64,000 bases of DNA, taken from NCBI GenBank assembly GCA_010909165.1, contig MU008205.1, forward strand, positions 62,001 through 126,000, read 5' to 3'. Source of the DNA: Anthoceros angustus. Taxonomy: Eukaryota; Plantae; Anthocerotophyta. The notes beneath the pieces were generated by a model that was not told the DNA's origin, ran no database searches, and was given only the letters and a program-made list of their open reading frames with translations. Position 1 is the stretch's first letter. Each line of letters starts with the position of its first letter. Below are positions 6,310-55,419 of the stretch, in pieces. The position numbers and the translations under genes are program-made.

Positions 6310-8244
6310 TCAGGGCAAAGCTATGTCCTTCGCCTCTGTGACCTCAGAAGAGTTGCAGGCCACTCCAGATGTGTCTACGGTAATGTTGGCATCCTTCAAA
6401 AGCCTGCGCGTGACTTCATTTGCATCACAACCAACCTCTTGCATTTCTTGGAAGACTAGAGTTGCCTCATCTCCAGCTCCTGACCAAATTAATGCTTCAA
6501 GAATCAGGTTGCAGATGTCGAGAAGAGGAAAGCCCCTGCCAGTCTTGACATCCTTCAAGAATTTTAGGGCCTCCTGAGCAAAAGCTTTCTTGCCCACGGA
6601 ACCAATAATGAAATTGAAGGTGCAGATGTCAGGACGGAAACTAGCCTCTTGCATATGATTAAGTGTAGCAAATACTTCAGCAACCAGCCCTTCCCTGGCA
6701 AGCCCATTGATCAGGGTTTTGAGGGTAACCTCATCCGCATCAAGCGCTCTTTCCCTCATCTCACTCAGCAATCTAAAGGCGATATGTGACGCATCTGCCT
6801 TTGTGAAGCTGTCAATAAGAGTGGAGTACATAGTGACACGAGGCTTACATCCTATTGCTTTCATTCCCTCAAACACATGAAGTGCTTCTTCCGTTCTCCC
6901 TAGGTCACAGAACCCTGTGATGATTGTGCAATACAAATCCATGTCACGAACTAGGCTTTGGACCTTCATCTCTTCAAAAAGTTTGAAGGCCTCATCTATT
7001 TCGCCGCTCCGTTTCAGGTGACCAATCAGGGCCGTGCAGCTGGACACACTGGGAAACAGATCCCTCTTTCTCATCTCCTGAACCACTTTGAACGCTTCCT
7101 TAGGTCTGTCCAACTTGATAGAGGCAGCAATCTGCATATTATAGGCTGGGAGATACGGAGTGCAGGCCGACTTTCTCAACTTTTGATAGGTGTCAAAAAC
7201 CGCTGCCGAATCATTTTGACCTTCAAGCGCTTGCATCATGGTGGTGTAAGCCTTGGTATCAAGAACGCAACCTTCCTCAACCATTTCCTTAAACACCCTG
7301 CGAGTGTTATGGTAATCCTTCGCCTTCACCAGCATTTGCAGGAGGCAGTTGTACGCTACGATATCTGGGAAGTAACCTATGTCCTTCAACTTCTCATATG
7401 TCTCCAGGGCATCCTCAACCCGTTCATAGCTCCTCAAAATAGGCGCATACACTAGCTTAGTAAGCTTTTCAGCCTCTTGCTGTTTCCTCTCCAGCAGCTC
7501 CCATACGTCCTGGTACCTTTTCTTGCTCAACAACATCTTGATCATGTACTGATACAAGTTGAGAGTAGGTTTACATCCTTCTTGTTGCCCTGCCCACCAG
7601 AAAAACTTGAGTGCCACTCTAGGATCCTTCTGGTGTTCCAGTATCATGTGTATCCGGCGGGTATTCAACGCTATTGCCAAGGGCTCTAAGTCCTCAATAG
7701 TTTTGGCTCCCCAGCCTTGCTCCTTCAAAATATTTCGCACAAGGGTGACATAATCACGTGTCTTCCACACGCTTTTGATAGCCACCTCCTTCCTCAGTCT
7801 TAACCTCTGCTTTTCCTGCCTAGCGTACTTGAGAGCTTGGCGAGGGGTAGTGGGCTTCTTCTTCTTGTAATGCTTGCCTACCTTGTCAGCAGCAGCACCA
7901 AAATCTCTGACTTGAATTGCTAAAGCGCCTGAAACCCGGCCTCTGATAATCCTAACAATGCCTCTACTAGAAACCCAAGTACGTGGAGCCGGCATTTCGA
8001 CATTCGGACTGAGCACAGAACTAGAAGGTGTAGACAGGAAGAGCTCTCTGCCAAACCAAGCCTGGGGTGGCCCCATTGATGCATGCTTGAAGATCGTAGC
8101 CCCCAGACCACAGCTGCCATCGCCTAGAACTGCCCAAAACTTGTTGGAAAATCCAGCTGCAGGCCCATTGCTTGCAAGACGAACAAGACTGCTGGTTTTC
8201 GTCACTCGCAGGCATTTGCAGAGCCAGGACAATCCACCCATCAC
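6310..8244 (-). CDS. P-type pentatricopeptide repeat protein
   Basis: 644-aa intronless ORF with ALKFFWWAGQQEG followed by about ten 35-aa PPR motifs (e.g. PDIVAYNCLLQMLVKAKDYHNTRRVFKEMVEEGC). No E/DYW extension seen. Confidence 0.9.
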   Translation of the reverse strand: MMGGLSWLCKCLRVTKTSSLVRLASNGPAAGFSNKFWAVLGDGSCGLGATIFKHASMGPPQAWFGRELFLSTPSSSVLSPNVEMPAPRTWVSSRGIVRIIRGRVSGALAIQVRDFGAAADKVGKHYKKKKPTTPRQALKYARQEKQRLRLRKEVAIKSVWKTRDYVTLVRNILKEQGWGAKTIEDLEPLAIALNTRRIHMILEHQKDPRVALKFFWWAGQQEGCKPTLNLYQYMIKMLLSKKRYQDVWELLERKQQEAEKLTKLVYAPILRSYERVEDALETYEKLKDIGYFPDIVAYNCLLQMLVKAKDYHNTRRVFKEMVEEGCVLDTKAYTTMMQALEGQNDSAAVFDTYQKLRKSACTPYLPAYNMQIAASIKLDRPKEAFKVVQEMRKRDLFPSVSSCTALIGHLKRSGEIDEAFKLFEEMKVQSLVRDMDLYCTIITGFCDLGRTEEALHVFEGMKAIGCKPRVTMYSTLIDSFTKADASHIAFRLLSEMRERALDADEVTLKTLINGLAREGLVAEVFATLNHMQEASFRPDICTFNFIIGSVGKKAFAQEALKFLKDVKTGRGFPLLDICNLILEALIWSGAGDEATLVFQEMQEVGCDANEVTRRLLKDANITVDTSGVACNSSEVTEAKDIALP

Positions 8245-11841: not shown

Positions 11842-13066
11842 GGAGGGGTGACTGTTTTGCAGGCATGCTTTATGTGTGCCTCCAGCTTGGGAAGTGGAGA
11901 ATGCCTGGCGGTCCTGCACATCATCGTATCGTTTCGACAACCCTCTCGGGAGACTGTGTGGATGGGTCTATGGGACCCTCGAGCTCCTGGTTCAGCAAAC
12001 ATGTGACAGGAGGCTGCAGTAATATCTGCAGCTTCTGTTACTCCCCCCGCCAGAGTATTCGATGGAAATGGCAGCTAAGGTGGTCCAGGTCTCCAGATAA
12101 AGGTCTTCCCTCCTCAAGGCACAAGTGTTCCACGGATGAATTAGCAAGGAGTTTTCCCAATGAAGCTTATCATTCGAGGTGGAACCCAAGTGGAGTGCAG
12201 TAGCATCCATGTGTGTGCAGCTGCTGCAGTTGTTGTGGAGGCCTTCAGGGAAAAAGTTGAGTGGCATGTGCATGCCGAGGAAGATAGTTCCTACGTTCCT
12301 AATCCCGAAGAGGCTATCCGGTTCAGATCGTCCACAAGACAAAAGGTCCGTTGTCGGATAAGCGGTATTACTGAAATCGTAAAACTTTTCTCCATTATTT
12401 TTCATTTTATTTTAGTCGAATGTAAAGTGCTAGCAAAAAAACAAACTTTAATTATTTATGCTATTTATTAGTTGTTCTTACATTATCCTTGAATAAGGAT
12501 ACGTACCAATATAGCCAAGTGCTTGAATGAGAGCAAAAGTACAGCCAAACTATCGGTCTCTTCTTTCTAGAATTCAAAATAAGACTATTTATCTAATTTG
12601 CCAAGCTATCATCATATTCATTCGAAAATTGAAAATAAAACTATTTATTTAATTTTTTCATTTCTCAACATTTTATGATGTCATACAGTTTAACTGTTTT
12701 AAAAAGTGCATGTATTCCTATGTATATATGCATGAATGTTATCAACAACTTGACAAGCCAACGTCCTAAGGTAATAAATAGGTTATACAAACTGAAATTT
12801 CATCACTGCTGATGATGGTAATGATGCAAATCTGATGACTCACACATGAAAGTGTACCTAAGAAGTTGTCATTGGGTTAGAAATAATTAGGCAGAATATT
12901 AAAAAAGAAAAAAGTTTCATTATCGATTAATTAATATTATTTAATGTATTCTTTTACTATTAATTTGGTCAACAAGAATCTATTACTATAAAATATTGGT
13001 TGAAAACATAAAGTCTACTCTCACAAAGCGTTGACAATACTTAAGCATCTATTTATGCTCACAAAC

Positions 13067-13075
13067 TATATAAAT
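13067..13075 (+). promoter_or_regulatory. Candidate TATA box of the BURP gene
   Basis: TATATAAAT upstream of a probable 5' UTR exon and intron (gtaag ~13173 to ttgcag ~13574). Confidence 0.4.
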
Positions 13076-13599
13076 CCATGTGCTCTTTGACGTCTTTGAC
13101 CTTAAAGTTTCCGGATAGATTCAAGTTCTCATTCCCTTCTCTTTTGAAGTCTTACAGACTCCTACCTATAAAGTAAGAAATAGTTCAATGTGTAGCTTGT
13201 CGAACATGCATAAACTTAGTGTACTTTTGATAATTATTGCTAATAAGTAGTCTTTGCAAAAGTTAACACAATTTTTTTTACATTTGATGGTGGTAAGATG
13301 CATACGGAAAGGTTAAGACTATGTGTTGCCAATCATGATATTTGTTGCTGATAAGTAGAATTGCATAAAGGTTAGCATCATTTTTTAGTTTAAAAAATGT
13401 TTGAGGTATTGCCCTAAGTTATAGAGTAATATGTCAATTTTGACTTTCAGAAATGTTTGAGATGTTACTTTGAGTTTTTGAGAAATATGACCGACTCTAT
13501 TTAAACCATTCTTAAAAATTTATATATTTTTATATTATTATTAAATTCTGATGGAGTGTGGGTTAAACTTGCAGATTGCTGTGGTGGAAATCATCAACA

Positions 13600-15009
13600 A
13601 TGGAATATCATGTTTTTATTTTTTACTTATTAAGTTTCTTATTTGTAAGTAAAAACTTATCATGTTCTTTCCGTACGTGAAAGTATATTTTGAATTATAA
13701 ATAGTGATTTACACATGTATAACTTTTCCTACAGGTATGCACGCTTGCAATCAGTGCTAAGCAAAATGGAGGTGACTTGCCAGGATCTGGAAAATATTAT
13801 TGGGAACAACATTTGTCTCATATTAATATCCCTTATGTGTTACAAAAGTTAATGTCTCCATTGACGTTTGTTGAACCGAATAGCCTGAAACTTGAATTTG
13901 AGACAAGCTCGAAGGTTCTTGACTTTTGCACTGCAGCTGGCATCTTATGTGAAGACGTGAATCCGGCTAGTAAGGTTGGTCCTTACCCATGGCCCGATAT
14001 TGATCCGGCTAGTAAGGTTGGTCCTTATCCATGGCCCGATATTGATCCGGCTAGTAAGGTTGGTCCTTACCCATGGCCTGATATTGATCCTGCTAGTGAA
14101 GCTAGTCCTTACCCATGGCCTGATATTGATCGGGCTAGTGAGGTTGGTCCTTATCCATGGCCTGATATTGATCGGAATAGTGAGGCTGATGATAATATTC
14201 TAGTACAGAATGCGATTGACACTAAAAGCACGTTTGTTGGTGAACCCAATGCTCGAGAGAAATTGGTTTGGTTCCTTGAGAAAGACCTTATATCAAATAT
14301 AGGCACTCCCAAGGCATTTCAAGTACCAGCTACAAAATTTGCCTCCGATTTGGTGGCCACTCCACGGCAATTCCTACCTCGATCTATTACCACACAACTT
14401 GGAAAACTCACAGTAAATAATCTACCAAATATCTTACAGAAGTTTCACATTACAACAAACTCCCTTTTGGGACAAGCTACACATGAAACAGCGAGGTTAT
14501 GTGAACAATTGCCTTCAACTCCAGATAGTGAGGGATCCTCCAATGTAGCAAAGAAACAATGCATACTATCATTTGAAGATATGACAGACTTTATAGTCTC
14601 ATTGGTACCTGAAGGAAGTAAACTTATAAGTGTTGAAGTGCTAAACACTATAAAACCACCATCCAAGGAACAAATTTTAGGACATGGTAATTTTACGGTT
14701 ATAAATGTGGAATTGAAAGGTAACAACGACTACACAATTATAGCTAATTGCCATTCTCCATACTCGGCATTTAGAGTTGAGTTATGTCATAGTATGGACT
14801 TTGTTAGACCTTATACAATAACCTTAGAATCTCCAACTCAAAATTCAGGTCAAATAACCACACTAGCTATGTGTCATGGGGATACTTCAAATTGGAACCC
14901 TCATCATCTTGCATTTAAAATATTGGGAAGTCACCCTGGGGGAGCAGCAATATGCCATTGGGCAGAACCCAATGACATTCAGCTTGTTCTTCATATTGAC
15001 TTCAAATAG
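13600..15009 (+). CDS. Secreted BURP-domain protein (~439 aa) with fused repeated core peptides; candidate BURP peptide cyclase
   Basis: Exon 1 13600-13644, intron 13645-13734 (gtaagt..acag) and exon 2 give signal peptide MEYHVFIFYLLSFLFVCTLAISA. PG1beta-like N-terminus (YW..SPL..FCTAAGILC), five PYPWP repeats, then BURP WFLEKDL..CH-x10-CH-x27-CH-x25-CH. Confidence 0.92.
13954..14187 (+). repeat. 42-bp coding tandem repeat, 5 full units plus a partial unit (DIDPASKVGPYPWP)
   Basis: Units at 13954, 13996, 14038, 14080 and 14122; PYPWP is invariant while the spacer residues vary. Confidence 0.95.
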
Positions 15010-16570: not shown

Positions 16571-17206
16571 CTGAAGCCCTCTCACGACCGACTCCCACTC
16601 CCAGTTCGATCTGTCGCTGTCTCGTAGGGGAGCGTGACGATGGCCTGCTGCGATCTGCGATGATGATTGCTCGCGGTCACCGATGCTCACTGGGCAGCGG
16701 GGACCATGGCGCGAACATTCTCACTGTCCTGGGCCCGGATTCTCATGGCGAACCAAACGGCAGTCCTAAAAGACCGATAAGCGGCACCTTGCAAGCGGGT
16801 CCTTCGGGACCCAGCTGATGACGTACCAGCGTCCTCGATGCAGGTTGACGGGCTCCGTGTACGAGAAACCAGCCTCGTGGCGGCTGCACTCTCTGGTCAC
16901 GCGTGCACCGATTCCAAGTGTGGCCGGCAGCCGGCATGGGGATTCACGGATTCATGAGAGAGGATGGGAGGCAGTGAGCTGTCAAGGAGGAGCCTCTGCG
17001 TGATGACGCACAGGGGACGTTGAAACGCAGAAATCGTCTCAGAATTCTGGGCGGCTCGGCCAGGCCCCAGCATTCGCAGGCATCGCTTCTGCCGGGAGAG
17101 AAGGCCGGCCAGAATGCGCGGCACCAAGGGGGAAGAACGGACTATTTATCGCATTTGTATGGAAGGGGACGGGGACTGGGACTGGGATGCGGGAGCTCGA
17201 TGCGGA

Positions 17207-20033
17207 ATGGGACATTTGCTCACCATGTATCTCATCTGCACGGTCTTGGCGTGCGGGAAGCACGCAGCGGGGGACGTGATCCCGCCCGACGCGCAAGTTT
17301 TGCTCTCTGCTAAGCAGGAGCTGTACAGCACGGCGTCCAACCTTGGGAAGCTGGAGTTCTGGAACACCAGCGCGGGCAACAGCAGCTTGTGCAGCTGGCC
17401 CGGAGTGGGATGCTGCGGGGCAGCGTCCAGGGTTTGCTCCCTGTCTCTGCAGTTTCTAGGGTTGCAGGGACCTCTGCCGGGGGTGCTGGGATCGCTCGCC
17501 AACCTCACCGAGCTGCATTTGGATGACAACAACTTCACGGGGGAGATTCCCTCCGGCCTGTTTCAGGCTGTCGGGTTGCAGGATCTGAGCTTAGGGTATA
17601 ATGCGCTTTCCGGCCCCATCCCAGCGGACGTAGGGAAGTTGCAGGAGCTGGTATTGCTGGATCTGCGATGGAACGGGCTTGTCGGCACGTTGCAGCCCCT
17701 GCAGGGGCTCAACCCGGCCGCGCTGCAGGTTTTGTATCTGGACGGCAACAGCTTTACCGGGGATCTGAGTCCCTTGGCTGCCTTCACGGGGCTGCGCACG
17801 CTCAGTGTGATGCGCAACCAGGTGAACGGCACCCTGGATGCTTTGGCGGGGGCGCTCGCAGGGCTGGAGAGTCTCTATTTGGCGCACAATCAGATGAGCG
17901 GTACGGTGGATGCTTTGGGAACTGCTTCCGGGCTTCGAAGCCTGGATCTGGGATACAACCGGTTTGGTGGTCAGCTTCCAGCTTCCCTGGCCAAACTCTC
18001 ATCTTTGCAGTACCTGCGGTTGAATTCAAATGGTTTCGGAGGAGTGACTCCATCGTCCCTGCAGCTGGGAGGATTAAGGCTGCTCCGTGTTATCAATTTC
18101 TCGAGCAACCAGTTCACGGGGGAAATTCCTTTCAAGATCTGCGACAACCTGGCTACCATCGACCTGTCAGACAACCAGTTCAACGGCTCGATTCCCGAGG
18201 CTTTCTTCAACACATCGTGCTCGAGCATGCTGGATGTGAGGCTTGGAGGAAATGAGCTCACAGGAAACTTGGTTGGAATCTTCAGCACTGCGCTTCCTCC
18301 CTTACCGATCTTGACTCTGAATCTGTCGGGCAATAGTTTGAGCGGGAGTGTTTCTGGAATAAGGTTGCGGTTGAAATCCTTGCAGAGGCTGCTGCTGAGC
18401 AAGAACAATTTCAGCAGCGCTCTGCTTCAGGATGTTTTGGTTTCAGGGTTCAACAGTCTCGAGGAAGTTGACCTAAGTCACAACGGTTTGGAGGGAAATC
18501 TTGAGCGTTGCTTGCATCCTTCGACCAGTTGCAATCTCTTGATCTATCTTACAACCTTTTCTCCGGCTCGCTTCCTCCCTTCCCCTTCAACAGCAGCTAT
18601 GACTACTCTTTTGCGGGGAACTCGGGGTTGTGCAGTTCTGATCCAGCAGCGCAACTTCCAGCTTCATGTCAAATCCAGGGCCCGCCTTCACCAGGCTCAC
18701 AGTCACCAGGCTCACAGTCTCCAGGCTCACCAAGAGGTGCACCAGGTATAAATTTGCGAATGCATTTCTTCCATGTCAGGTGGTCGTTCCGGGCCCTTTA
18801 GTCTGACGAGTGACAAAGTTCCCTTCCTTTCCTTCAACAGTTACGACGGTGGTGGCGGCAGCTGTGGCGGGCTCCGTTGCTGTCGTGATTGTAATCTTCG
18901 CATTTGTTCTGTGGCGTTCGAGGGTCAAGGCTGCCAGATTGGAAACTACAGACCCGGATCTGACGGCAGCAATTCAGGAAGGGGTGAATGTGGCTCCCAT
19001 GCCTGTAAGCATACTGCGCCAGGCCACTCAGAATTTTTCTGACAGCAACAAGATTGGGGTTGGAGGCTTCGGCACGGTGTACAGGGGCACGCTCCCAGAT
19101 TGCCGCGAGGTGGCCATCAAGGTGAGCAAGCGGGTTGGATCTGAGGGGGGCAAACGCCAATTCCTGAACGAGGTGCGCATTCTCGCGCAAGTGAATTACC
19201 GCGGTCTGGTGCTGCTGGTGGGATGTTGCCTCACCCCCAACTTCGCGGCCCTGGTGTTCGAGTTTGTATCACAAGGGACACTGGAAGAGCATCTGCGGGG
19301 CAAGAGACGCCCCGTCGGCGGACTGACATGGGAGAGGAGGCTCACCATCGCCTTCCAGACAGCGGATGCGATTGCCTACCTGCATTCTCGGGCCAACCCA
19401 CAGATTATACACCGGGACGTCAAGTCTGCTAACATCCTGTTGGACGACAACCTTGATGCCAAGGTGGCAGATTTCGGCATTTCAAGAACGGCCGCCCTGG
19501 CTGCAACTCATCTGAGCACCTTGACCGCAGGCACCCCAGGCTACATGGATCCAGAGTCTTTCATCACCGGCCAGCTGACGGCTAAGAGCGACGTTTACTC
19601 CTTCGGGGTGGTGTTGATGGAGCTGCTCACTGCGAAGCCTCCCATAGGATTGGAGGGGAGCAATGTGGTGCCAGCAGTGGAGGCGACCAAGCGTGACGAA
19701 TTAGATCAGGTTCTCGATGCACCACTGAGGCACCAATATGAAATGGATGCAGGCAGCAGGAGCTCCATGCGCTTTGTGGCCGATTTGGCAGTACAATGCT
19801 TGCAGCAGAGACCCGCAGACCGACCCAGCATGACAGAGCTGGTGTCCGAGCTGGAACACCAGGTTCGATACCACCGACCCAAACCTGGCAAAACCGTTGA
19901 GGAGCACGAGGAAGCCCCTTTACTACCGGACTCCAACAACCCGGGCTCATCATCGGACGGCTTTAACCCGGGCCCTGATACGCTAGAAATAATCCGTGCC
20001 GGTATTACAACCGTCAATTTGTCAGGACGATGA
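17207..20033 (+). CDS. LRR receptor-like kinase (RD kinase, WAK-like kinase domain) with an apparent 1-nt frameshift near 18506
   Basis: Signal peptide, LRRNT (CSWPGVGC), many LxxLxLxxNxxxG repeats, capping FAGNSGLC, intron ~18746-18840, TM, then kinase motifs GVGGFG/VAIK/HRDVKSANILL/DFG/GTPGYMDPE. Confidence 0.88.
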
Positions 20034-22090: not shown

Positions 22091-27439
<5,349 letters not shown>

Positions 27440-29502
27440 CGTCGGCGTCTCCACCACCGGCGAGGTCCGCCTCAATTGCCACAACATCAACTGAAAGGAA
27501 AGGGCAGGGAAGGGAAGAAAAGGGAAGGAAAGGGCAGGAAAGCTCTCTCCCCAACCAGGTTGGAAATCTTGACTTAAAGATGAAATGTTACGAGAGGGAT
27601 GTGAAGGCATAGCATAGTCAGTGGTCGGAGGGACAGGGTGTCCACTGTTTGCTGTTCCACCAACGCTAAGGGAAGGAATTCAGGGTTGCGGTTTGATTCT
27701 GGATCGCAGCTCGAAAATACTTGAAAGCCTCTGTTCGCATCTCCTGGGCATCTGCAACTGCCTTGAGCATCTGCAACTGCCTTGAGCATCTGCAACTGCC
27801 GGTCCCCTGTAGGTTTGGCAAGTGCTTGTGTTGCGCTCTCAGCGTATGCCCCTGGTTTCGACAAATAACTTAAATCTTGGGCTGGATGTACGAAATTACT
27901 CCAGGGCCATGTGATTGCTTGCAAATTCTACAAGCAAATGTGCCCACCTAGCGGGTCCACATGAGCTGTGCTTGTTGCTTGTGGGATTTGTCTGCAAATC
28001 AACTCCCCTGCCTGCTTGGTGATAGGAGTTCACTAGTTTTAGAGTCAAAGCTTTTGTTTGGCGACAAAATATTGAGTCAAATTACAAATTAGCCCCAAGC
28101 TTGAGGCGGTTTCCGTATCAGCCATGATCTTACAGGTTGCCCAGATCTGGGGTTTCCGTGGCGTACAGGACTTTGTGGCTTTTCAATAGCTAAGTCACTG
28201 ATGGGCAAGTTGAAGAGAAAATCAAACTTAGGAAGCAACAGAGGGTGTGGTGAAATAATTTGGGGATCCATAGAGGCTCCGCATCAGTTTTCAAACTCAA
28301 TCTCAGGTGGCACCATATGAGTTCTTAGCCAGTCAGCATCATAAAGGAGCGCTATTGTGGTTTAGTAGAATTGGAAGTCCACAAGAGAGGCCTTTTGTGG
28401 CCTTGCTTACTGGATCCACCACCTCAAGTTAAGGCTTGTTCTATTCCATAAGTACTCCAATTCACGCGACCTTCAGGGTCTCCTTTGTCACACTGTATCA
28501 ACATAGATTGAATCGCAACCCTCAAAGTTTTATTTCTTACTGTCCAGGGCTTTGAGAGTGGGAAAATTGGTTTAGTAGTTGGAACCCAAAGGCTTATTTC
28601 AGAATCTGTGAAATTGGGAGAGCTATTACTGTCATTGATGAACAGAATCATTCCCGGGCAGATCAAAATGGGACGCGTGCACAGCAACGTTATGTTTTCT
28701 TCATGAACCCATGAACCAGTGTCTGCCTCTAGTTTTAAGGTGAAGCTGCTCTTGTTGTCTCGAGTGTTCAGGACTGGCCATTCAACCACTGACTTGAGTG
28801 TCACTGATGGTGATGACTGCACTGGAAGCAAGATGAGTGCTCTTACCACATGACTTGCCAATGGCAAGTTGCCATGACTGCAACACCAATACCGAGAACC
28901 TTTGGCTTTGGCAGTGCATGTTCCATGGCACTCACTCAGGTCAGGACTCAGGCTTGACATTTTGATCGTATCCTATTACATCCAAGCTTCTGGTTACAGA
29001 TATGGTTTGCATTTCTGAAGCCATTATCCTGAGCTGTGAAACAAATGAGAAGAATATCATGACGCCTGTAGATAGAAGAATCAACTCCACCTACCTGTGG
29101 CCTGACTGTAATCAGGGCCAAGCAGGGCCACTACTGGCTGACAGGCTGGGTTGCCATGGCATCAAACGTCAGAATGGATAACGCACGGATACTCGCATAC
29201 TCGAATATGTACTTCGAACAAACAATGGTGGTATCAATGTTGTCGTCAAATGTCCGGTTGGACAAGGACGCATTTTATTCTGAAGAAAGGACGGTAGTAG
29301 GTACATACCGACTTGTCAGAATTCTGGAAGATTCCCTCGAAGCATGAACGGCCGCTGCACCTTGCCTGATGCTCTGCCGCTAATGGACATTTGGAAGACT
29401 ATATGCTCGCTGTGAGAAAGGTAAACCTACGTTCTCATTGCCCACGGACAGCCCAGGGTCAGGAATTGACGGGATTACCATCACCGCGCGCAGTGCGTAG
29501 GA

Positions 29503-30237
29503 CTAGGGGCACGCCTCTTTGAAGCGTCTAGTGGAATCCGTGGGGCCTAGTCCCTGTCTCCTGATGGAGGAGATGGAGTAGCCACGGTTAAAGGACTCCA
29601 GCTGGCTATCGCCATCGCACAACTCGTACGTAGATATCGGAGACGGAGCAGGAGATGGGGTGCAGTCGGGGCCCCACGGAACGGTCCTGAGCCCGGTGTT
29701 GTAGGCATTCACATTGCTGACATCGTAGGAGTCGACTCTGCCAGGCTCGATGTTGAATTCCGCCAGATTACACATCTCCTTGCTGACAGGAGTGCCAGGT
29801 CCAGCCCGTCGGCCACGCACTGCGCATTCAGGGAACGCCATATGGTTCCCCTACGGCCAGTAGCAGGAAGGAAATCGCAACACCTGTGATGCTCCCTTCA
29901 GCAAGTCGTACTCATAAATTTCGTTCCCTCCCGACTGCGCAGATGCTCGCACGCCTTCGGAGCAGATATTGTGGAGGGTGATGCTGCAACGTGGACAGAG
30001 ATTGAAATTGGGATCATAGCTCCAGCAGGATGAGGAGACACCACCACCTCCCGCGCACATGCTCGCACGCCTTCAGAGCAGTTATTGTGCAGGGTGACAC
30101 AGGAACCTGGACAGATACGAAAATTGGGATCAGAACTCCGACAACGTTTAGCAAATCACACGAATGACAACTAACCGTGCACTCATACTGCCCAGCAGGA
30201 GCAGGATGAGAAAACAACACCACGCTGCGAAAGCCAT
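29503..30237 (-). pseudogene. Thaumatin-like pseudogene copy 1
   Basis: LAEFNIEPGRVDSYDVSNVNAYN..RRFKEACP then TAG; C-terminus missing; duplicated exon-2 start. Confidence 0.75.
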
Positions 30238-31919
30238 TGCGAGACCTGCTCAAGTCTTGCACCTGGACATCTCAACTTCGTCCAGCATTCAATCTAGATA
30301 TAAATTATGGCTCCTCCGGTTCAAATGATGTGAGCACTCTAATCTTCCGGTACAACTACTACAACCCATAGTACTGTCCGGCCGGCCGGGCGTCGCGCCG
30401 TGGGGCTGCCGGTGGATTTGTCTGCAAATCAACTCCCTGCCTGCTTGGTGATAGGAGTTCACTAGTTTTAGAGTCAAAGCTTTTGTTTGGCGACAAAATA
30501 TTGAGTCAAATTACAAATTAGCCCCAAGCTTGAGGCGGTTTCCGTATCAGCCATGATCTTACAGGTTGCCCAGATCTGGGTTTCCGTGGCGTACAGGACT
30601 TTGTGGCTTTTCAATAGCTAAGTCACTGATGGGCAAGTTGAAGAGAAAATCAAACTTAGGAAGCAACAGAGGTGTGGTGAAATAATTTGGGGATCCATAG
30701 AGGCTCCGCATCAGTTTTCAAACTCAATCTCAGGTGGCACCATATGAGTTCTTAGCCAGTCAGCATCATAAAGGAGCGCTATTGTGGTTTAGTAGAATTG
30801 GAAGTCCACAAGAGGCCTTTTGTGGCCTTGCTTACTGGATCCACCACCTCAAGTTAAGGCTTGTTCTATTCCATAAGTACTCCAATTCACGCGACCTTCA
30901 GGGTCTCCCTTTGTCACACTGTATCAACATAGATTGAATCGCAACCTCAAAGTTTTATTTTACTGTCCAGGGCTTTGAGAGTGGAAAATTGGTTTAGTAG
31001 TTGGAACCCAAAGGCTTATTTCAGAATCTGTGAAATTGGGAGAGCTATTACTGTCATTGATGAACAGAATCATTCCTGGCAGATCAAAATGGGACGCGTG
31101 CACAGCAACGTTATGTTTTCTTCATGAACCCATGAACCAGTGTCTGCCTCTAGTTTTAAGGTGAAGCTGCTCTTGTTGTCTCGAGTGTTCAGGACTGGCC
31201 ATTCAACCACTGACTTGAGTGTCACTGATGGTGATGACTGCACTGGAAGCAAGATGAGTGCTCTTACCACATGACTTGCCAATGGCAAGTTGCCATGACT
31301 GCAACACCAATACCGAGAACCTTTGGCTTTGGCAGTGCATGTTCCATGGCACTCACTCAGGTCAGGACTCAGGCTTGACATTTTGATCGTATCCTATTAC
31401 ATCCAAGCTTCTGGTTACAGATATGGTTTGCATTTCTGAAGCCATTATCCTGAGCTGTGAAACAAATGAGAAGAATATCATGACGCCTGTAGATAGAAGA
31501 ATCAACTCCACCTACCTGTGGCCTGACTGTAATCAGGGCCAAGCAGGGCCACTACTGGCTGACAGGCTGGGTTGCCATGGCATCAAACGTCAGAATGGAT
31601 AACGCACGGATACTCGCATACTCGAATATGTACTTCGAACAAACAATGGTGGTATCAATGTTGTCGTCAAATGTCCAGTTGGACAAGGACGCATTTTATT
31701 CTGAAGAAAGGACGGTAGTAGGTACATACCGACTTGTCAATTCTGGAAGATTCCCTCGAAGCATGAACGGCCGCTGCACTGCCTGATGCTCTGCCGCTAA
31801 TGGACATTTGGAAGACTATATGCTCGCTGTGAGAAAGGTAAACCTACGTTCTCATTGCCCACGGACAGCCCAGGGTCAGGAATTGACGGGATTACCATCA
31901 CCGCGCGCAGTGCGTAGGA

Positions 31920-32658
31920 CTAGGGGCACGCCTCTTTGAAGCGTCTAGTGGAATCCGTGGGGCCTAGTCCCTGTCTCCTGATGGAGGAGATGGAGTAGCC
32001 ACGGTTAAAGGACTCCAGCTGGCTATCGCCATCGCACAACTCGTACGTAGATATCGGAGACGGAGCAGGAGATGGGGGTGCAGTCGGGGGCCCCCACGGG
32101 AACGGTCCTGAGCCCGGTGTTGTAGGCATTCACATTGCTGACATCGTAGGAGTCGACTCTGCCAGGCTCGATGTTGAATTCCGCCAGATTACACATCTCC
32201 TTGCTGACAGGAGTGCCAGGTCCAGCCCCGTCGGCCACGCACTGCGCATTCAGGGAACGCCATATGGTTCCCCACGGCCAGTAGCAGGAAGGAAATCGCA
32301 ACACCTGTGATGCTCCCTTCAGCAAGTCGTACTCATAAATTTCGTTCCCTCCCGACTGCGCAGATGCTCGCACGCCTTCGGAGCAGATATTGTGGAGGGT
32401 GATGCTGCAACGTGGACAGAGATTGAAATTGGGATCATAGCTCCAGCAGGATGAGGAGACACCACCACCTCCCGCGCACATGCTCGCACGCCTTCAGAGC
32501 AGTTATTGTGCAGGGTGACACAGGAACCTGGACAGATACGAAAATTGGGATCAGAACTCCGACAACGTTTAGCAAATCACACGAATGACAACTAACCGTG
32601 CACTCATACTGCCCAGCAGGAGCAGGATGAGAAAACAACACCACGCTGCGAAAGCCAT
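31920..32658 (-). pseudogene. Thaumatin-like pseudogene copy 2
   Basis: Same lesions as copy 1 (ACP-TAG, internal deletion, chimeric 5' part). Confidence 0.75.
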
Positions 32659-33990
32659 TGCGAGACCTGCTCAAGTCTTGCACCTGGACATCTCAACTTC
32701 GTCCAGCATTCAATCTAGATATAAATTATGGCTCCTCCGGTTCAAATGATGTGAGCACTCTAATCTTCCGGTACAACTACTACAACCCATAGTACTGTCC
32801 GGCCGGCCGGGCGTCGCGCCGTGGGGGCTGCCGGTGGGCGTTGTAGCTCGCGCGACAGTCTTGCAGTTCACCTTGCAAAAAGGGGATGCAAACAGCATGA
32901 TTTTTTTGTACAATCGGGGCGAGAAAGTCTCTCCTATTGAGGCTGGTAGGAAATGTGAATCACAGTGTTGAGGTTTCAAGGATCGCGACAGGTCTAGCTA
33001 TGGCACCTTCTCGGCAACCTTCTCGGCAAAAGATGTTACTAGTCAGTTTTTTCAGGTACTGAAAGGTAAGGTGTGAGGGGGACCGGGAGTGAGTATCTCC
33101 AGATGTGGACTGTGCTTCTTGGATGCAAGCAGTTGGGACGATCTGGTCAGGTTGGAAATCACCAATTGCTACGAGAAGGATGTGAAGGCATGCCATGAAG
33201 TGAACAACTAGATGATGCTGGTTCTGCATAGCATCATACAGTCAGTGGTCGGCGGCACAGTGTTGCTTTCGTCCACTGTTTCCAGTTCCACCAACTAAGA
33301 GAAGGAATTCAGTGTTGCGGTTAGATTCTGGAGAAGCTCGAAATTACTTGAAAGTACTCTGTTGGCATCTTCTGAGCATCTGCAAGTGCATGTCCCCTGT
33401 AGGTTTGCGACTACTTGTGTTGTTCTCTCAACTTATGCCCTTGTATTTTTGACGCAATGACTCAAGTCTTGGTTGTTCTCTCAACTTATGCCCTTGTATT
33501 TTTGACAAAATGAGTCAAGTCTTGGGCTGCATCTACAAAATCACTCCAGGGGCATGCTACTTCTTCCAAATCCTGCAAGCAAATATGCTCACCTAGCAGG
33601 TGCACTGTACTACATGAGCTCTGTTTGTTGCCTGTGGGGTTTGTCTTCGCATCAACTCCCCTGCCTTCTTGGTGATAGGAGTTCACTACTTCTGGAGCCA
33701 AATTTGTTTTAGCGAGAAAACTTTCAGAGTTAAATCTCCGTTGCTTGAGGTGGGTTCTTCATTGTACACGATCTTACGAGTTGCCCAAATCTGGGGTTTT
33801 CATGGAATACAGGATTTTGTGGCATTTCAAGAGGCTAAGTCACAAATGGACAAGTTGATGAGCAAAGTTGATCCTTGGCTGTTCCTCTCAGCTAATCGTC
33901 ACTTCCAAGGAAGACAAGATGCTTGCAGTGAAACAGGTCAACCTATTTCTCATTGCTCACTGACAGCCCAGTGTAAGGAATTGTTTAGGA

Positions 33991-34741
33991 TTACCCGTTT
34001 GACGGACAGAAGGTTACATGGTAGGATGTGCCGTGGGCGCACGTGAAGGTGGAAGTAGCGTCATCGTGGTTGTAGCTGGAGGCCGAGGGGCACGCGTCTT
34101 TGAAGCGGCGAGTGGAAGTCGTGGGGCCTAATCCTTGCGACCCGTCGGTGTTGATGCAGGAGTGGAAACCGCCATAAAAGCTCTCCAGCTGATTATCACC
34201 ATTGCAGAAGGCGGGGATATCGGAAATGGTGCACTGGATGGAGTTGCACTGGGGGGCGTCCACGGGACCGATCCTGAGCCCGATGTTGTAGGCATTCACA
34301 TTGCTGAGATCGTAGGAGTCGTCTCTGCCGGGAACGATGTTAAATTCCGCCACATTAGCCAGGTTCTTGTCGTTAGCGGTGCCAGGTTGACCACCATCGG
34401 GCACGCAGTTCTGCGTGATGGAATTCCATAAGGCTCCTGACGGCCAGTAGCAGGCAGGGAATTGCAACTCGTCCGAGTCCGCCGGTCCAATTATGTACTC
34501 ATAGATTACGTCCCCTGCCGACTGCGCGCATACTACCACGCCGTAGGAGCAGTGGTTCTGGAGCCTGATACTGCAACCTGACAGACCACATAAAACCTCC
34601 AACAACATCATGGCTCACAATCCATCGGGATAAAGAGCTCTACGAACATTACGGCTTAGCGAATCAGATGAACGACAACTAACCGTGCACGGGTACTGCA
34701 ACAAGAAGAATGAGGAGACAACACCACGCTACGAGAGCCAT
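33991..34741 (-). CDS. Secreted thaumatin-like (PR-5) protein, 2 exons
   Basis: Signal MALVAWCCLLILLVAVPVHG, intron, then IRLQNHCSY..AEFNI..DSYDLSNVNAYN..FKDACPSASSYNHDDATSTFTC..YHVTFCP; TATA-like run at ~34810. Confidence 0.88.
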
Positions 34742-39959: not shown

Positions 39960-40229
39960 CTAAACAACCAAAGTCATCATGTTCATGTCAAATGCTTGCC
40001 CAAGCAATCGACACTGCCTTCCTGGCCACTCCTGTCTTCGTGGTCTCAAGAAATCCCATGGCCAACTCCTTCTATATCGTTGGCTCCTGGCCTCGCCATG
40101 TCTATCCACCACAACGCTGTGGCCATGGTTCGGCGTAAGACTTGACTTGGAAGAGTTGGCCAAGCCGCCATGGGGTGTCCAGTGTTCACGTGGAAGCAGC
40201 CTGTCTTTGACGACCCGATGGTTTGATGC
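39960..40229 (-). pseudogene. C-terminal half of the retroelement C5 cytosine methyltransferase
   Basis: HQTIGSSKTGCFHVNTGHPMAAWPTL, EPTIxKELAMGF (motif IX-like), RLLGQAFDMN (motif X-like). Confidence 0.7.
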
Positions 40230-40379
40230 GGGCGCCGGCATGCCGCCCCATGTCCCGTGAGAGGCGGGGAGGGCCGGCATGCCACGCCCCTCTCCTCCGA
40301 TATGGATGTGGTGCCGGCATGCCGGTGCCCCTCCCTTGGTGTTATAGCAATGACATTCCAACCGCATATGGCCACAGAT

Positions 40380-40767
40380 GGGGAGCGATCGCAGCGCCTA
40401 TGTTGGATGAAGATTATTTGAGCAAACTGCAGAATCGCGATGCAAAAAGGTGGTTCCGTAAAGCCTTGTGAAGCTCGAGAACTTGAGGCTCGCATCATTT
40501 CGACTCTCCATGCATGATCCGAATGTGGATGAGGCTGGGCTAACTATTTGGCGCATGTGATAGCAAAAGGACGTATAGAGGAAGGAGTCCTCCTTTCTCT
40601 CGTATGATTGACCCATCGAATGCGTGGATATCGAAGCTGGGCTGGATCAAGTTTCGCTGGCACGTGATGGGAGTCTTAGGTGGCAATCATACATATGCCG
40701 CCATGAAGCACCTTGGCGACATATCGCCAGGAAGGCAAGGTTCCAATGGATGGAGGCCCATGTATTA
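40380..40767 (+). pseudogene. ParB/Srx-like N-terminal part of the MTase gene
   Basis: VDEA..LAHVIAKG, MGVLGGNHTYAAMKHL, FQWMEAHVL, ending at the TATTA junction. Confidence 0.55.
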
Positions 40768-41027
40768 GGGAACGACGCCGGAGGCCACGGCCGAGAACGG
40801 TCGAGGCCGCTAGGCCGAGACCGTTTCTCTACTGCGGCGCCCATGAGTGTTCGCTCGGCATAAGGGAGCGAGGTCAGCCGACGCCGCCACCGACTTGTAA
40901 TCGAGGCGAGTCGAGGTCTGCATCTTTAGAATTGTTGCCTTGTGCAACCAAGTTAGAAGTCTTTTTCTCTCTCTCGTAGTTTTCACCTTCGCACTTCGTA
41001 GTTTTCACACACTTTACGCTTGTCTTT

Positions 41028-42760
41028 TCACACTTTGGGATTTATCTTTCTAACTTTCTTCTCGGCGTTGAAGGGTGTACACCGCGATTTCCTGCCTTCT
41101 TCGTAATAATACTTCTTTCTTTGTTCATTGTACGGTCCAGATAGAAAGTTAATCATTTCGAAAATTTCGTCCAAACGGGAATATTTCTGCAGGCAATGGT
41201 AAATGTCAGACATCGTACATATTAAATTTCACCACTGTAAATATGATATACTAACCTCAAATAGTGCAAACAACTCCTTTTGATTCTTCGATAACTACAA
41301 ACAAAAAACGGAGTTAATATTTTACCTCCATTTCAAGTCGAAGAAGATCTTGCTCAGAATACCTTTCTCACTAATGTGAGGCAATGGCTGTGAAGATTTC
41401 CCACACTACGGAAATGTGATTGAACGCTACGCAAAGAAATATCAACCTTAAATTTGCATATTTGGTAAATACCAATATTAATATTTTCCTTGTTTATCTG
41501 AAATTATTCTGAACTAACCTTTTGAATGTTTTTGTAGTTTCGGATCTTCCATCGAGTCAACAAGTCATGGTTTTAGCTCCTTATTTTCAATGGCTGATAT
41601 TTCTACATTACCAAAACACAAATTTCATTTACTACATAAAGCGATTCAAATAAACTATTAAAAACAATATAAACCGATAAAACTTACTTTTGGATCTCCA
41701 TGTCTTTGCTCTAGGGTTCTGTCGACCCATCTTCATTAATTGTCTTGGATCTTTGAGGCTATGTTCCCAAATGGGAACATATCTATTTTAAAATCTTGGA
41801 AGACTTGTGGATACTGAAAGTTATCCATCCATTTTCCAAAGTCGACAAATTCCTTCGACGGTCCATACGTTGGTGCATTATCTTCTGACTCCTCTTTTTT
41901 CCTCTTTTTGTCCTTTGGAAAAACAGTAATTAGTAAGTTATATACTAGTTACAAATATACTAATTATTAATTACAAATATACAATAGCAATTACCTGATG
42001 AGATATGGCTGTGTTGTTGATTTTGTCATCCATTGCTTCAATTTTCTCCTTAATTTTCTTAGCTGCAGCAACTTGTTCAGCAGCACTCTGTAAACAAATA
42101 TATTAGTACTTATTTGTGTAAACAAATACATATAATACTAAGTGTTGTTGTTTACCTCAAAATCGATGAATTGAGATCGATGTCCATTAAACCTCGGACA
42201 GAGTCATTGTTTCCAACTCTAATTGAGCCGTTGTTCGGAGATTCTTCTTAATATCCTGTAACCATATACAACTAAAGTTGCGAGACCTATATTTGTCTAT
42301 AGTCCTAGAGAAGTTGCGACCAAGTCTTTACCTTTTTAATTTTTTCGAGTTGGCACACGCAAAGGAGTCAAGTCCTTTTGTCCATTGATGTGAACATAGT
42401 GTGCTCCGTGAGTACTGTAACAAAGATATAGAGTTAGAAATGTTGACAGTAGATTCAATTGAGATAATTGTAATGTAGTACCTTTCTCAACTATCTTTCG
42501 TATCTCAATGAGAGGATTTCAACTTCACTGTCATCATATCCTGATCCCCATGGGTGGAACATGGTTGTTCGATCGCCAGTTAAGGTTTGTTGGGTCTCTA
42601 CTATTGTGGTCGCTCGAGAAACCATTTTAGCCATGGATTCATCAACCACAAAATGGATTTGGTGAGGTAGAAATTATCATTACCTTCTTGGATGTCGACC
42701 ATTTCATCGTTGCTCATTCTCGGATGCCATTCGAAAAAGCAACGCTAATGTACACAAAAC
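41028..42760 (-). pseudogene. Uncharacterised multi-exon partner gene of the Crypton-like element (copy 1)
   Basis: Exons conserved with 59.5-61.6 kb, e.g. PTYGPSKEFVDFGKWMDNFQYP vs PTYGPSLEFTEFGKWMSNFQYP, IGESKASCFHSL-like and QKYSRLDE; shared splice positions. Confidence 0.55.
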
Positions 42761-42999
42761 AACGCTCAAACTTGAACAAGTTGGGTACATACAAGCGTTG
42801 TTACGCACTGTAATCGTTTGTTCGTTGGAGTAACTTGCCGGTATCTTTGTGTTGTGTGGATCGTGTGGGCATCGGGTCGAGGTATGCTTGCGCAAGAACT
42901 ATTAGAGTCACGTGGGCAAGACACATAAGAAGGAGTCACCAAAACCCAAGCACGTAGACATACCGAAGCAAAAGACATGGTTAGCTTATCTTCAGCACG

Positions 43000-45900
43000 G
43001 GCAGGCCGCGGGTGGTACCGGTCGTTACACTCGATGTTGGGCTCCGTGAGGGACCCATCGATGCCGAAGACCCGCACTCGCCAAGACGGACTATTGCCTT
43101 TGTCTGGATTGAGTGTGGCCAAGGTCGAGGTATGCGAATGAGCGTTGGGAGAGGCGGAGAGCAACTGCACAAAAGAAGGTACAAAGGGTGTTAGCCCAAA
43201 ACCCAGAAGTACAGACGCCCAAATACGCAGAAATCAAAAGGAGATGAAACCCCTCAGCAGAAGGGAAAAGTGAAGTACCGGCCGATCTTTAGATATTGTT
43301 GGGCGCCACGAAGATCGATGATGCTTGCTTGAACACCGCCAAGATGTTGAAGACTCGCTCCGACAAATACGAAAGGCAGAAGCAAGCAAAGCAGCGGAGC
43401 ATAGCACTCCAAAACTCCAACTAATTCGAGAACGCTGAGCTCCGGACGCCGATCGCAAAGATGCAGTGAAAAAGGATCGATTGAACGCCGAAATGGAGGG
43501 GACATCCGTCGAGACCAAACGCGAGGCGCGTAACCCGACAAGCGGCGCCAAGGAGGGCGCAATTGGCGTGGGAGTCTCCAGCAGTGAGTTTGCAACAAAA
43601 AGTCCGAAATCAGTCAAGAAAATAAGCCACTGCAACTGTGAAGCGGACAAAAGTTAATGGACTACCTTTAAAGCCGGATGTCTTCACCACCATACCTTCA
43701 CAAGATGTCCAGATTGGCTGCAACTTCAAATCGCAGCGCCCGCTACTGAGTTGCACCGCATGAAAAACCCACATCGAAACAAAATTTTCGACTATCATCA
43801 CGGATGGCGTGACGGCGGACCAAGCTCAATCAGGGGGCAATGGCCAGCGCTACACCGGTCGAAGTGAGAAAGTGGGCGGACGAACGCGTGAGGGGGTAGT
43901 GGTTTAAATAGGGATTAGGGTTCCGGATGCTTCTGGCGGAGGCCTACGTCTATTTCGACCCGGAGTTTCGCTTTACCGCCGCTTCGAGGTTCGGGTTAGG
44001 TTGGTAAGGTTTGGTTAGGTTTGGTGAGCTTAACTTAGGTTTGAAGTGTCATGGCGAATCTAACCTAGAAAGGTTTGGAGTTAGGTTTGGATTTGTGTTT
44101 GGTAAATTCAAAGAGGTCCGTAGATGAGAGTGGCGGCTGAGAGAGAAGGGCTAGGGTTTCTTTGGCTATATAAGGTCTTACTTCAGTCCAACGTCTTTTC
44201 GATTGTAGGCAAGGCCAAGGGTTCTAGCGCCTTTGAACAGCGCCTCTCAAAGATAGGGGTTATTCTCCATTAAAGGGTTTGGGTCCCTAAAGACCAAAAA
44301 TGACCCCAAAACGGGCCAAAATGCATCATCTTTAGCAAAACCACTCTTAGACATGTCAAAGACATTGACCATGTTATTTTCTCGTGAATACTTACGCTAA
44401 GGTCAAGAAGGTTCATGGATTTCACCTTCACAAGGAAGGGATTTCAAGGATTTTAACAGTGCTAGGAATCCTAAACACCTCTTTCGCAGATAGTACTTCC
44501 TAGGTGGTGAACAGAGGCAAACCAAACAAAATTAGTCCAAGAAGCCAAACTACGGACGTCAAAACCAACACGCAAAAGTAGCACCGAAGTCGAAGAAGAA
44601 TCACGGACGCCCGAATTGTGAGAGAACATTAACCGATAGCTTGATCATGGCCATCTCGAGAGGACCAAACTACGACTCTAAAAGTAGCGCTGACGTCTGC
44701 ACTTTGAGTACACAACCCGGATCTCCATTGTTAGAGTGAAAACATAGAAGGAATTGGAACAATGCGCCGGACGCTCGCACATTGGCGCGAGTCTAAAAGC
44801 ACCGGACGTCCGCGATTTTCTGAGACCCCAATCTTGTGGGCGCCCATGAGATGGAAATGGTGGAGTGGATTGGACGTCCGACATCTATATTTATTGTTTG
44901 TCTTCTAGAAATATCCGCTGGGATAGGTGCATAGACTCAATGGCAAGAACTCAAGGTTAAGCACTCCAGGATGGGGTGCTTGACTGGTGCTTGAGACCAT
45001 GCATGGCTAGGATGCTTGCTTGGGCGCTTTGACTTTGCTAAGAATATGCACTCAAATTAGAACTAGGATGGCTTGCTTGTTTTGGCGCTTTGAAAACTTT
45101 GTAACAACTCCATCAAAGCAACCTAGAGGCGTATCAATACTAGGATGGAGTGTTGATTTTTAGTGGTTTGAAAAATTTGTAAATCATCCCGTATCTAGGC
45201 GTAAAGTCATGAATATTATTTTTGAAAATCATTTGTTGGTTGATGTTATATTCCACATTCGCTTTGTATACAACATGTTAAACCTTTTGGCCTTACTCTA
45301 TGTGATTCGACTTGCGGTGGATCTCTTTGATTGGTGCAAATGTCAAGCTCATTCGAGTTTGATGCACGTATAGATGCATAGGCCTTGGTTTCTAGATGAG
45401 CTACATTTTCCAAAATTACATGTATGATGGTGGTTTCTAATGGCCAACCTTTTGAAGACGACAATGTTTCACAATGTTTTGCGGAGAAGCGAAAATAAAT
45501 AGAATAGATGATTTTTCCTTGAGTAATGAAAGCACATCGGATGCGGTCGAACAAGCATAAGAGAGCATCTGCACGCCCTGCGAGCCCTAGTGAGAGCCGG
45601 TAGTGTCGAAGAGGGCTGGTCGCCGGGGTTTTGACCAAATGGCTGAGTATTTGTGAGGCTCGAAGGAGGACCTATCTATACCTTGTAGCGCCCACTACGG
45701 TACATGTTGGGTTTAGAGGCGAACTATAGCTTTTGAGATTTTGAATTTAAGATCGACTTGCTCCATGTGCCACCCATGGATAGATTAAGGTTGAAAGCGA
45801 TGCGGACTTGACAAGAAGAAATGTAAGCTACGAAGAGTTTGATCAAGAGCGGTTGAGGAGGCCTCACCATCCTTTACCTTGTCAATTCTGCGAGGCCAAT

Positions 45901-47300
45901 CTGCGGATCTAAGTGCGGCTTATCTCTCGGCGGAGGGGCCGTCGGGGCGGTATACTGCCGTGCAGGATTGCTCGAATCACGGGGTTTGAAAAGAGAATTG
46001 ATGTGAGTGTTGGTGCGGTGGCAAGTGTGCACAAGCAACTTGAACGAAAGTGCTTGCCTACACAAGTATTGACGCAACCCTCTCCAAACCCGGTATTGCA
46101 CCTCTTTGAGTATAAGCGCGGACGTTCGGTGCACTCTTGGAGCATAAGTCACCATCCGCCACTTGGTACAAAGTGTGTCCGCTATTTGTGTGACGGTGGG
46201 CATTAGGTCTTCCTTGGGCTCGGATGCATGGCATGGGTTCGCAAATCACTGAAAACAGTGAAATGAGACATGTGCATTTCTGGATGGTTGGGGCCAAAAT
46301 GGGGTTCGGAGGCAAACCCCTATGCTGAGAAACACTGTTTTTGTGTCCGAGCTCTTTATATGTCCGTGAGGAGTCTGTTGTTGTTTACGCTCAGTTTGAA
46401 GGCGTGCTTTTATGTTACGTTAGGGTCTTCCTCCGAAGGCTAAGGTTTCTCGGATGCAAAGGCGACATGGTCATGTTTTGCCAAACGCCGCCTCGAAGGT
46501 TTCTGCCTCTCAAAATGCCGCCTAGGTGAAAGTTCGCTACCTTTGTTCTGTCAGTGTTGTGTTTTGCGCGTCATTGCTCCTTCTTCGTTACTACTTGCTC
46601 CTTTCTTTACTGTTTGGTTGAGCATGTGTTTTTAGTCTTTAAGTCCTTCTCACGCTTTTCTTCAGAGTCCAAGGTGTTTTCGAGGCTTTGCTCATGAGAG
46701 TTTTAGTTTTCGCTCATGGTTCTTTTCAGCTCTGTCCCAAGGATAGGCCTTTTTGTAGTCATCAAGTCCAAGGTGGTCAAGCCTTGCTAGGTCAAGGTTT
46801 GTCGAAGTTTTTGGGCCAAGGTTCTATCATCCTCTTAAAAGGTTAAGGCCATTTCACGTCCTGTTCAAACGCCAAGGTTTCTGTAAAGTTTCTTTTCAAT
46901 GCCAAGGTCGTTTTTCTGCTGTGCTTGAAGGTTGGTTTTCGAAGGCCAAGAGGTCCCTAGGTCCGAAGGTGAGGGTGTCTTTGCTCCCGAGGTCCAAGTT
47001 GTTTATCCGAAGGCTTTTGTTGTCCAATTTGTTGGTTTTTGTCGCTTGCCAGTATGCTGGAACGCCCGCGGCGTGTGATTGCTTGCTCACAGTCATTACA
47101 TTTAGTCGACGTGCTAGTATTAGCGCGGCCTTAAGCGCCAATGCTTTTGAGCGCTAGTGTCTTCAGGTCTAGTACTTCTCAGCGCTAGCGCTTTTAGTTC
47201 TTGTGCTTTTTAGCGCTTGGTTGCCAGCGCTAGTGCTTTAAAGTGGTAGTGTTTTCAGGTTAGTGTGTTTTAGCTCTAGATTGTGCAGTTGGTTTTGTGT
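43000..47300. mobile_element. Unassigned insertion(s) inside Crypton copy 1, absent from copy 2
   Basis: The gap between the two element genes is ~6 kb here versus ~1 kb in copy 2; contains tagggtt/ttaggttt-rich LTR-like sequence. Boundaries approximate. Confidence 0.4.
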
Positions 47301-52000: not shown

Positions 52001-52371
52001 TGGAGAGGAGACAAGAGCACATTAAGCATCAAGAGAAACTCAAGCAGCAGCAGAAAGAGCAGCAAGAGGTTCGAAGATTGCAGTGAAAGACAGGAGAAGA
52101 ATGTGCCTCGAGATATTTGCATCGCTATCTCGCGAAAATCCCGGATTGGTAAGTTTTCTTATGCTCTTTATTAATCGCAGTAGATTGAAAATCAATGGTT
52201 GTGTTTTATTGGGTTGTGACCTTGCAGGAAGACGGACAATTTCGTCCAAGTCCTCAGCTTCATCAATTGGTTGCCAATTATGATAATGTTGTACAAGTGC
52301 CAATCAAGCCAAGTGGTCGGGAAAATTACATTTTCAATCTGTATAATTGTACAGTGAATTTCCCTAAATAA
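49071..52371 (+). pseudogene. DUF3504/Crypton-type tyrosine recombinase, multi-exon, frameshifted
   Basis: MAPKRKP start; RGFNRIL; QFGVRGGEELH (catalytic R, ~50316); KNFKNYK; WY; TNKSCRVTMITRL (50821, K in place of H in HxxR); VT(G)HK; YDR (~50992); terminal FNLYNCTVNFPK*. Confidence 0.75.
50395..50447 (+). repeat. (GATGTTTT)6+ intronic tandem repeat
   Basis: Six full 8-bp units plus a partial unit. Confidence 0.9.
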
Positions 52372-54830: not shown

Positions 54831-55105
54831 AGGCAAGGGTAAATGCGGTAGTCTTTGGATATGCAGGCGGTGCCACAGTCCCAACCATGCGGATTAATTG
54901 GGCGATTAGGTCAAAGTTAAGTGGCGGTGTCCCATGATTTGATTTCGTTATAGTGCAAAAGCATGCCGTCTTGACTTATATACATATTACGTGTTTGGGA
55001 TTTGAATCCTTTTATGCATATGTTACGTACCATTGTGTTCATAGTTTGCATACATTCTTTGCATGCATGACTTGATCTCCTCATTATCATATCCGCATAT
55101 CATAT

Positions 55106-55350: not shown

Positions 55351-55419
55351 GAGCGCAAGCGGTCGAGGTTTTACAAGGCGACATTATATTCAGCCCCTTC
55401 AAATATTAGCATGTTATGC

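Follow-up and report, generated by a model that had tools for sequence, protein, structure and literature searches.

Does a gene that places five copies of a short Tyr- and Trp-containing, proline-rich motif in front of a BURP domain encode a burpitide cyclase acting on its own repeats? The locus raising this question was found in a 64-kb stretch of DNA, hereafter the window.

Gene structure and repeat array

The gene is real and intact. It consists of two coding exons, 13600–13644 and 13735–15009, encoding 439 amino acids; the initial annotation had placed it at 13600–15009, which fits this model, though the intron was not mentioned there. The features, all on the plus strand, are the following.

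13067..13074, +, TATA-like box TATATAAA, putative promoter, called from sequence only
13173..13574, +, putative 5'-UTR intron with GTAAGA donor and TTGCAG acceptor, predicted from the splice consensus only
13600..13644, +, coding exon 1, ATG at 13600, 15 codons; hydrophobic, N-terminal portion of a probable signal peptide
13645..13734, +, phase-0 GT-AG intron of 90 nt, GTAAGT donor, CAG acceptor
13735..15009, +, coding exon 2, 424 codons and stop, frame uninterrupted
13792..13953, +, conserved N-terminal segment with a helix region (YW..P..L..PL) and the motif C-x-x-A-x-I-x-C, common to PG1-beta-type and bryophyte BURPs
13960..14169 (about), +, five tandem units of 42 nt (14 aa), 91% matches, predicted to be disordered
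13981, 14023, 14065, 14107, 14149, +, PYPWP candidate cores, one per unit
14269..15006, +, BURP domain: WF (FF) motif, surface Cys pair, four Cys-His pairs

The two-exon model is supported by the homologous locus L001, since the latter has a hydrophobic first exon of 13 codons and an intron at the same position and in the same phase; locus L002 contains a candidate for an equivalent short first exon. The exons were searched one by one, rather than as the joined protein. The signal peptide, also proposed earlier, agrees with the hydrophobic leader in exon 1 (mean Kyte-Doolittle value of residues 5–15, 2.65) and is a prediction by hydrophobicity per exon only.

The five 14-residue repeats with an invariant PYPWP and a varying spacer are present as initially described, and the stretch common to all five units is in fact two residues longer, PYPWPDI. 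The PYPWPD codon pattern yields five matches against 0.00 expected, by which a chance or simple-sequence origin of the repeat was rejected; open reading frames in the alternative frames across the repeat were rejected as well. The variable sites of the array comprise no replacements and two silent changes in the core, and five replacements and two silent changes in the spacer, a contrast that by itself is not significant (Fisher p 0.17). The second position before the Tyr is Gly or Ser, the third is Val, Ala or Leu, and the repeats contain no Gln. An Asp-Ile/Val pair is situated nine and eight residues ahead of the first Pro of the core, where it may bear a weak resemblance to the recognition sequences of split precursors. 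The array was said to lie directly upstream of the BURP domain, and indeed the distance from the start of the last PYPWP motif to the WF (FF) motif is 40 residues.

The BURP domain and its predicted structure

The domain matches the Pfam BURP family (PF03181) with E-value 8e-34 and 117.5 bits, the cut-off being 27. All four Cys-His pairs reported earlier are intact: they start at 14749, 14785, 14872 and 14953, and their spacing of 10/27/25 conforms to the family pattern CH-x10-CH-x25-27-CH-x25-26-CH. The domain starts with WF in place of FF, a variant common to the clade, and the surface Cys residues at 14500 and 14560 enclose a 19-residue loop, compared to C-x11-12-C in the family. In this subclade, Met residues stand beside the second and third Cys-His pairs (14785–14877 in the window) and are possible Cu(I) helpers, by analogy with the Met residues that border the copper sites of AhyBURP (PMC12164859).

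The AlphaFold model, built on an alignment of 137 sequences, has mean pLDDT 79.6 and pTM 0.79. Residues 80–147 of exon 2, that is, the repeats, have pLDDT below 50, and no repeat is placed confidently. Compared with the PDB, the model is closest to AhyBURP, 8SY3 (Z 14.1, 189 aligned residues, rmsd 3.9) and 8SY2 (Z 13.8, 183 aligned), the next match having Z 2.8. A phmmer search of the PDB with exon 2 gave no match, and a profile search of the PDB found 8SY2. The structure search of the Atlas returned BURP clusters only; the Atlas feature search on the repeats gave no result.

The His residues of the four Cys-His pairs are essential in ArbB2 (PMC12186524) and AhyBURP (PMC12164859). On the model, the catalytic fold and the four copper-binding His are in place, copper binding itself being predicted. 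This His set is not proof of cyclase activity, since nearly all BURPs keep it, including those without a known product.

Position in the BURP family

The tree was constructed for 52 BURP domains with a midpoint root only, and AhyBURP, introduced through its alignment, is the one known cyclase represented. The window protein groups with two homologs, P0001 and P0005 (support 100/99), and this trio belongs to a clade (99/96) that also holds the BURP protein MARPO_0056s0129 of Marchantia polymorpha (P0015), in agreement with the bryophyte-grade host suggested in the initial annotation. A branch with support 100/100 parts the RD22-like proteins from the window/Marchantia clade and the PG1-beta proteins. 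The window protein does not group with the RD22/USP-type proteins; it also lies outside the PG1-beta clade (100/99) and has no FxxY repeats. The N-terminal Cys motif is seen in 11 of 13 proteins on the bryophyte side, in 9 of 13 PG1-beta proteins and in none of 25 on the RD22 side. Judging by tree and motif, the window protein belongs to the PG1-beta side of the family, away from the RD22/USP-type cyclases. Where the papers surveyed name the type of a characterised cyclase, it is RD22 or USP, GheBURP being RD22-type. The phylogeny with known cyclases called for initially is thereby obtained in part: the clade with Marchantia emerged, the position is away from the RD22-like side, and the comparison with known cyclases extends to AhyBURP only.

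History of the PYPWPD motif

The closest proteins all come from one plant sequencing run, SRR33208241, which contains at least nine BURP paralogs of this type; its DNA is 68–71% identical to the window, hence it represents a different genome. The homologous loci are also AT-rich (36–47% GC). The slot between the conserved Cys motif and the WF motif varies in these paralogs from 36 to 227 residues and cannot be aligned.

Nevertheless, the slot of P0001, a protein 37% identical overall to that of the window and with the same top structural match (AhyBURP) by Foldseek, contains one SPYPWPD, exactly as in unit 4 of the window array. Only 3 of 100,000 shuffles reach six or more matches, and seven other paralog slots have at most two or three residues in common with the array. 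PYPW is absent from all other fetched proteins (155 to 160). Since the motif is preserved as a single copy within an otherwise hypervariable slot, it appears to be old and conserved: as far as the sequences tell, PYPWPD is older than the array, has been kept against a freely drifting background, and was amplified recently. This single-copy homolog makes the window gene a stronger cyclase candidate than could be demonstrated from the window alone.

P0005 has the closest BURP domain (45% identity) and an intact His set, and its slot has neither Tyr nor Trp, having in common with the window only a different, non-aromatic 7-mer. The grouping of the window protein and P0001 as sisters is not rejected (AU test, p 0.12). 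Either P0005 has lost the motif or the other two are sisters; the sequences are compatible with both. P0005 (L002:794-1942) itself may be a split, trans-acting cyclase or a core-less control.

The search with the clade profile yielded no further homologs, and no related locus was found in the JGI metagenomes. Thirteen tandem-pattern matches in these metagenomes were dismissed as chance, none having a BURP domain or the motif in the tandem frame.

Several other paralogs have peculiarities of their own. In P0009 (L005:2135-3796), a member of the same clade, all four Cys-His His are replaced and the slot contains a long Met/Asn/Ser-rich tract; it is probably a pseudo-enzyme. In P0010 (L007:1344-2333), the first and second Cys-His pairs have lost their Cys and kept the His. 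The slots of P0059 (L010:1799-3274) and P0016 (L008:1168-2427) have single Tyr-rich patches, HFYYY and QVWYY..LGYY, respectively, which are possible single cores.

Comparison with known systems

SkrBURP of Selaginella kraussiana, the source of selanines, has the fused type II layout seen here, with cores VLFYPSY, FLLYPY and ILLY (PMC11253845, PMC10349150). Going by the published descriptions of SkrBURP, in both proteins the N-terminal cores are repeated and lack Gln, the core contains Tyr-Pro, and the host is a seedless plant. However, Tyr is the final residue of the SkrBURP cores, which yield Tyr-O ethers, whereas the last aromatic residue in the window is Trp, followed by Pro-Asp. The elaeagnin precursor of Elaeagnus pungens (core LPIIY) likewise has fused repeats, a free N-terminus and a Pro, three positions ahead of the aromatic residue, that is cross-linked through its C-beta; its aromatic partner is Tyr-O, in a flowering plant, while the candidate in the window is Trp. 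Selanine VLFYPSY and elaeagnin LPIIY (PMC11253845, PMC10349150) show that the absence of an N-terminal Gln, pointed out initially, is nothing new.

In the lyciumin/stephanotic-acid-type cyclases (LbaLycA, CcaBURP1/2, KjaBURP, GheBURP), repeated cores precede the BURP domain and the rings are formed at Trp. The i/i+3 spacing in QILFW and QLxxW cores is comparable to that from Pro to Trp in PYPW. The known members have cores starting with Gln (QPx5W, QILFW, QLxxW), unlike the window repeats; at that, the absence of Gln does not bar this class, because the termini do not define classes in the nomenclature, and the window product would still be filed there if the bond were Trp-N or Trp-C.

AhyBURP (8SY2/8SY3) has the same fold (Z 14, 21–22% identity) and the four Cys-His pairs, but it is of type I, with a single core inside the BURP domain, and the equivalent stretch of the window protein has no Tyr/Trp core. 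In the cyclopeptide alkaloids, a Tyr-O ether is formed to an upstream C(sp3), usually of Leu, Pro, Phe, Tyr, Ile or Val two residues before a C-terminal Tyr. The Tyr of the window repeats is internal, with Gly or Ser at the corresponding position. The Marchantia protein shares the clade and, with PG1-beta too, the N-terminal Cys motif, but has no PYPWPD motif and no repeats. We found no report of cyclase activity for the Marchantia/PG1-beta branch.

Proposed function and alternatives

Taken together, the evidence makes it somewhat more likely than not that the gene encodes a fused cyclase of type II that depends on copper and cross-links its own repeats. The defining feature of fused burpitide cyclases is side-chain macrocyclisation of the core with copper and O2. 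In type II precursors the repeats are N-terminal of the BURP domain (PMC8672867), and here repeated Tyr/Trp core motifs precede the domain in the same chain, with the four copper-binding His in the AhyBURP fold. The fused burpitide cyclase of the initial annotation therefore stands as regards architecture, the four His and motif conservation across genomes, while secretion, copper binding, catalysis, the bond, peptide release and the role are proposed.

The protein would enter the secretory route, the His of the Cys-His pairs would bind two copper ions, and O2 would be used to abstract hydrogen from the tethered repeats. One side-chain ring per unit would be formed inside PYPW with the loss of 2 H, or of 4 H if the product is bicyclic. 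The likeliest bonds would be from the Trp indole to a carbon of Pro (i-3) or to the Tyr C-beta (i-2). In favour of the former, PYPW gives the same i/i+3 spacing as the Trp links of cercic and stephanotic acids, and in elaeagnin a Pro C-beta is known to take part in the cross-link; in favour of the latter, the i/i+2 spacing is that of Tyr-Pro-Tyr in SkrBURP FLLYPY, and the cross-link of selanine A is known to involve the Tyr C-beta. The burpitide literature surveyed contained no Trp-Pro bond and no bond from Trp to a Tyr C-beta. A Tyr-O ether to an upstream residue would be a less likely second ring, since the upstream residues vary. For the same reason, Gly/Ser and Val/Ala/Leu ahead of the motif are unlikely to be fixed cross-link sites; out of the links suggested earlier, one inside PYPW is retained, while the Gly carbon and a core starting with VG or AS become less likely. 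Proteases would then cut the charged spacers, releasing up to five small cyclic peptides, probably with a role in defence or stress.

Some observations go against the cyclase reading. The conserved unit continues beyond the Trp (Pro-Asp and Ile/Phe), whereas known cores end at Tyr or Trp. Fused burpitide cyclases typically release peptides of 4–8 residues with Tyr or Trp at the end, and the conserved Pro-Asp makes the core boundary uncertain here. The Pro following the Trp may block trimming, and Pro-Asp-Ile/Phe could serve as a follower or in recognition, or point to a product longer than known cores. Further, the apparent position off the RD22-like side, the PG1-beta-type N-terminal Cys motif, and the slot without Tyr/Trp in P0005, the closest BURP domain (45%), all seem to weigh against a cyclase.

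Since the protein is on the PG1-beta side, a cell-wall protein, not considered initially, has to be weighed: a secreted PG1-beta-like structural protein whose BURP domain may still oxidise the aromatic residues, the product being the entire repeat polypeptide of about 70 residues, which is modified where it stands or joined to the wall or to other chains, with no small peptide released. We consider this rather unlikely. It would account for the tree position and the Cys motif, for repeats that are Pro-rich, acidic and disordered, and for the lack of an obvious conserved cleavage site beside the core; the 14-residue repeats of tomato PG1-beta reportedly persist as the mature protein once the BURP domain is removed, which also favours it. 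However, a single copy, as in P0001, is more in keeping with a substrate motif than with a structural polymer, there are only five units, and the FxxY repeats of PG1-beta are unrelated in sequence. Unlikely, too, is that PYPWPD is a conserved binding or autoinhibitory linker element, or a partner docking site, multiplied by recent and largely neutral slippage, with the enzyme acting in trans or in another oxidative role. The 91% identity of the units speaks for a young expansion; P0005, which lacks the motif, is intact, as a split cyclase would be, and the slot varies freely between paralogs. On the other hand, Tyr and Trp with Pro are exactly the substrate residues of BURPs, the replacement changes in the array all spare the motif, and cross-linking by AhyBURP reportedly extends to non-native aromatic residues of its tethered core (PMC12164859).

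That the gene is a silent or decaying copy without a current product seems very improbable: although the receptor-kinase and peroxidase genes nearby have frameshifts in the assembly and some paralogs of the relative (P0009, P0010) have degraded Cys-His pairs, here the 424-codon exon is unbroken, the splice sites are canonical, all the conserved Cys and His are kept, and a TATA-like box is present.

All burpitides described so far come from vascular plants, of which a clubmoss is the deepest (PMC11253845). A literature search, with the main Nat Chem Biol papers outside its scope, gave no paper combining BURP and PYPW and none on hornwort BURP cyclases. We suggest, as a possibility about which we are more doubtful than confident, that this is the first burpitide pathway of a non-vascular plant (probably a hornwort), based on a BURP branch apart from RD22/USP and yielding a Pro-rich cyclic peptide closed by a bond not described before, Trp-to-Pro or Trp-to-Tyr. 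The type of system is known; the novelty would lie in the core, the branch of the enzyme and the host group. If so, peptide cyclisation would be basal both in the BURP family and among land plants; confirmation of the cyclase would mean a new ring chemistry and an activity that predates or parallels the vascular plants. The biochemical role of BURPs, especially on the PG1-beta side, is directly testable through one construct of the window gene, with P0001 (one copy) and P0005 (no copy) as natural single-core and core-less controls.

Genomic surroundings

The gene is situated in an AT-rich island, with 34% GC in 12001–14000 compared to about 50–60% around it. There is no second BURP gene in the 64-kb window, and neither a peptidase nor a methyltransferase was seen among the neighbours checked at the ORF level. 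The neighbourhood has a defence flavour, and several of its genes carry frameshifts in the assembly:

6310-8244, -, P-type PPR gene, intact and without introns, 644 aa, best match a Logan protein (SRR33208242, 49%)
17114-20033, +, LRR receptor-like kinase in two ORFs split near 18750 by a frameshift or small intron
23463-27612, +, class III peroxidase gene in two tandem copies, each with a frameshift in the assembly
29503-34611, -, thaumatin-like gene in three copies, of which one (33991-34611) seems to be whole

The region 40000–56000 features a strong strand skew.
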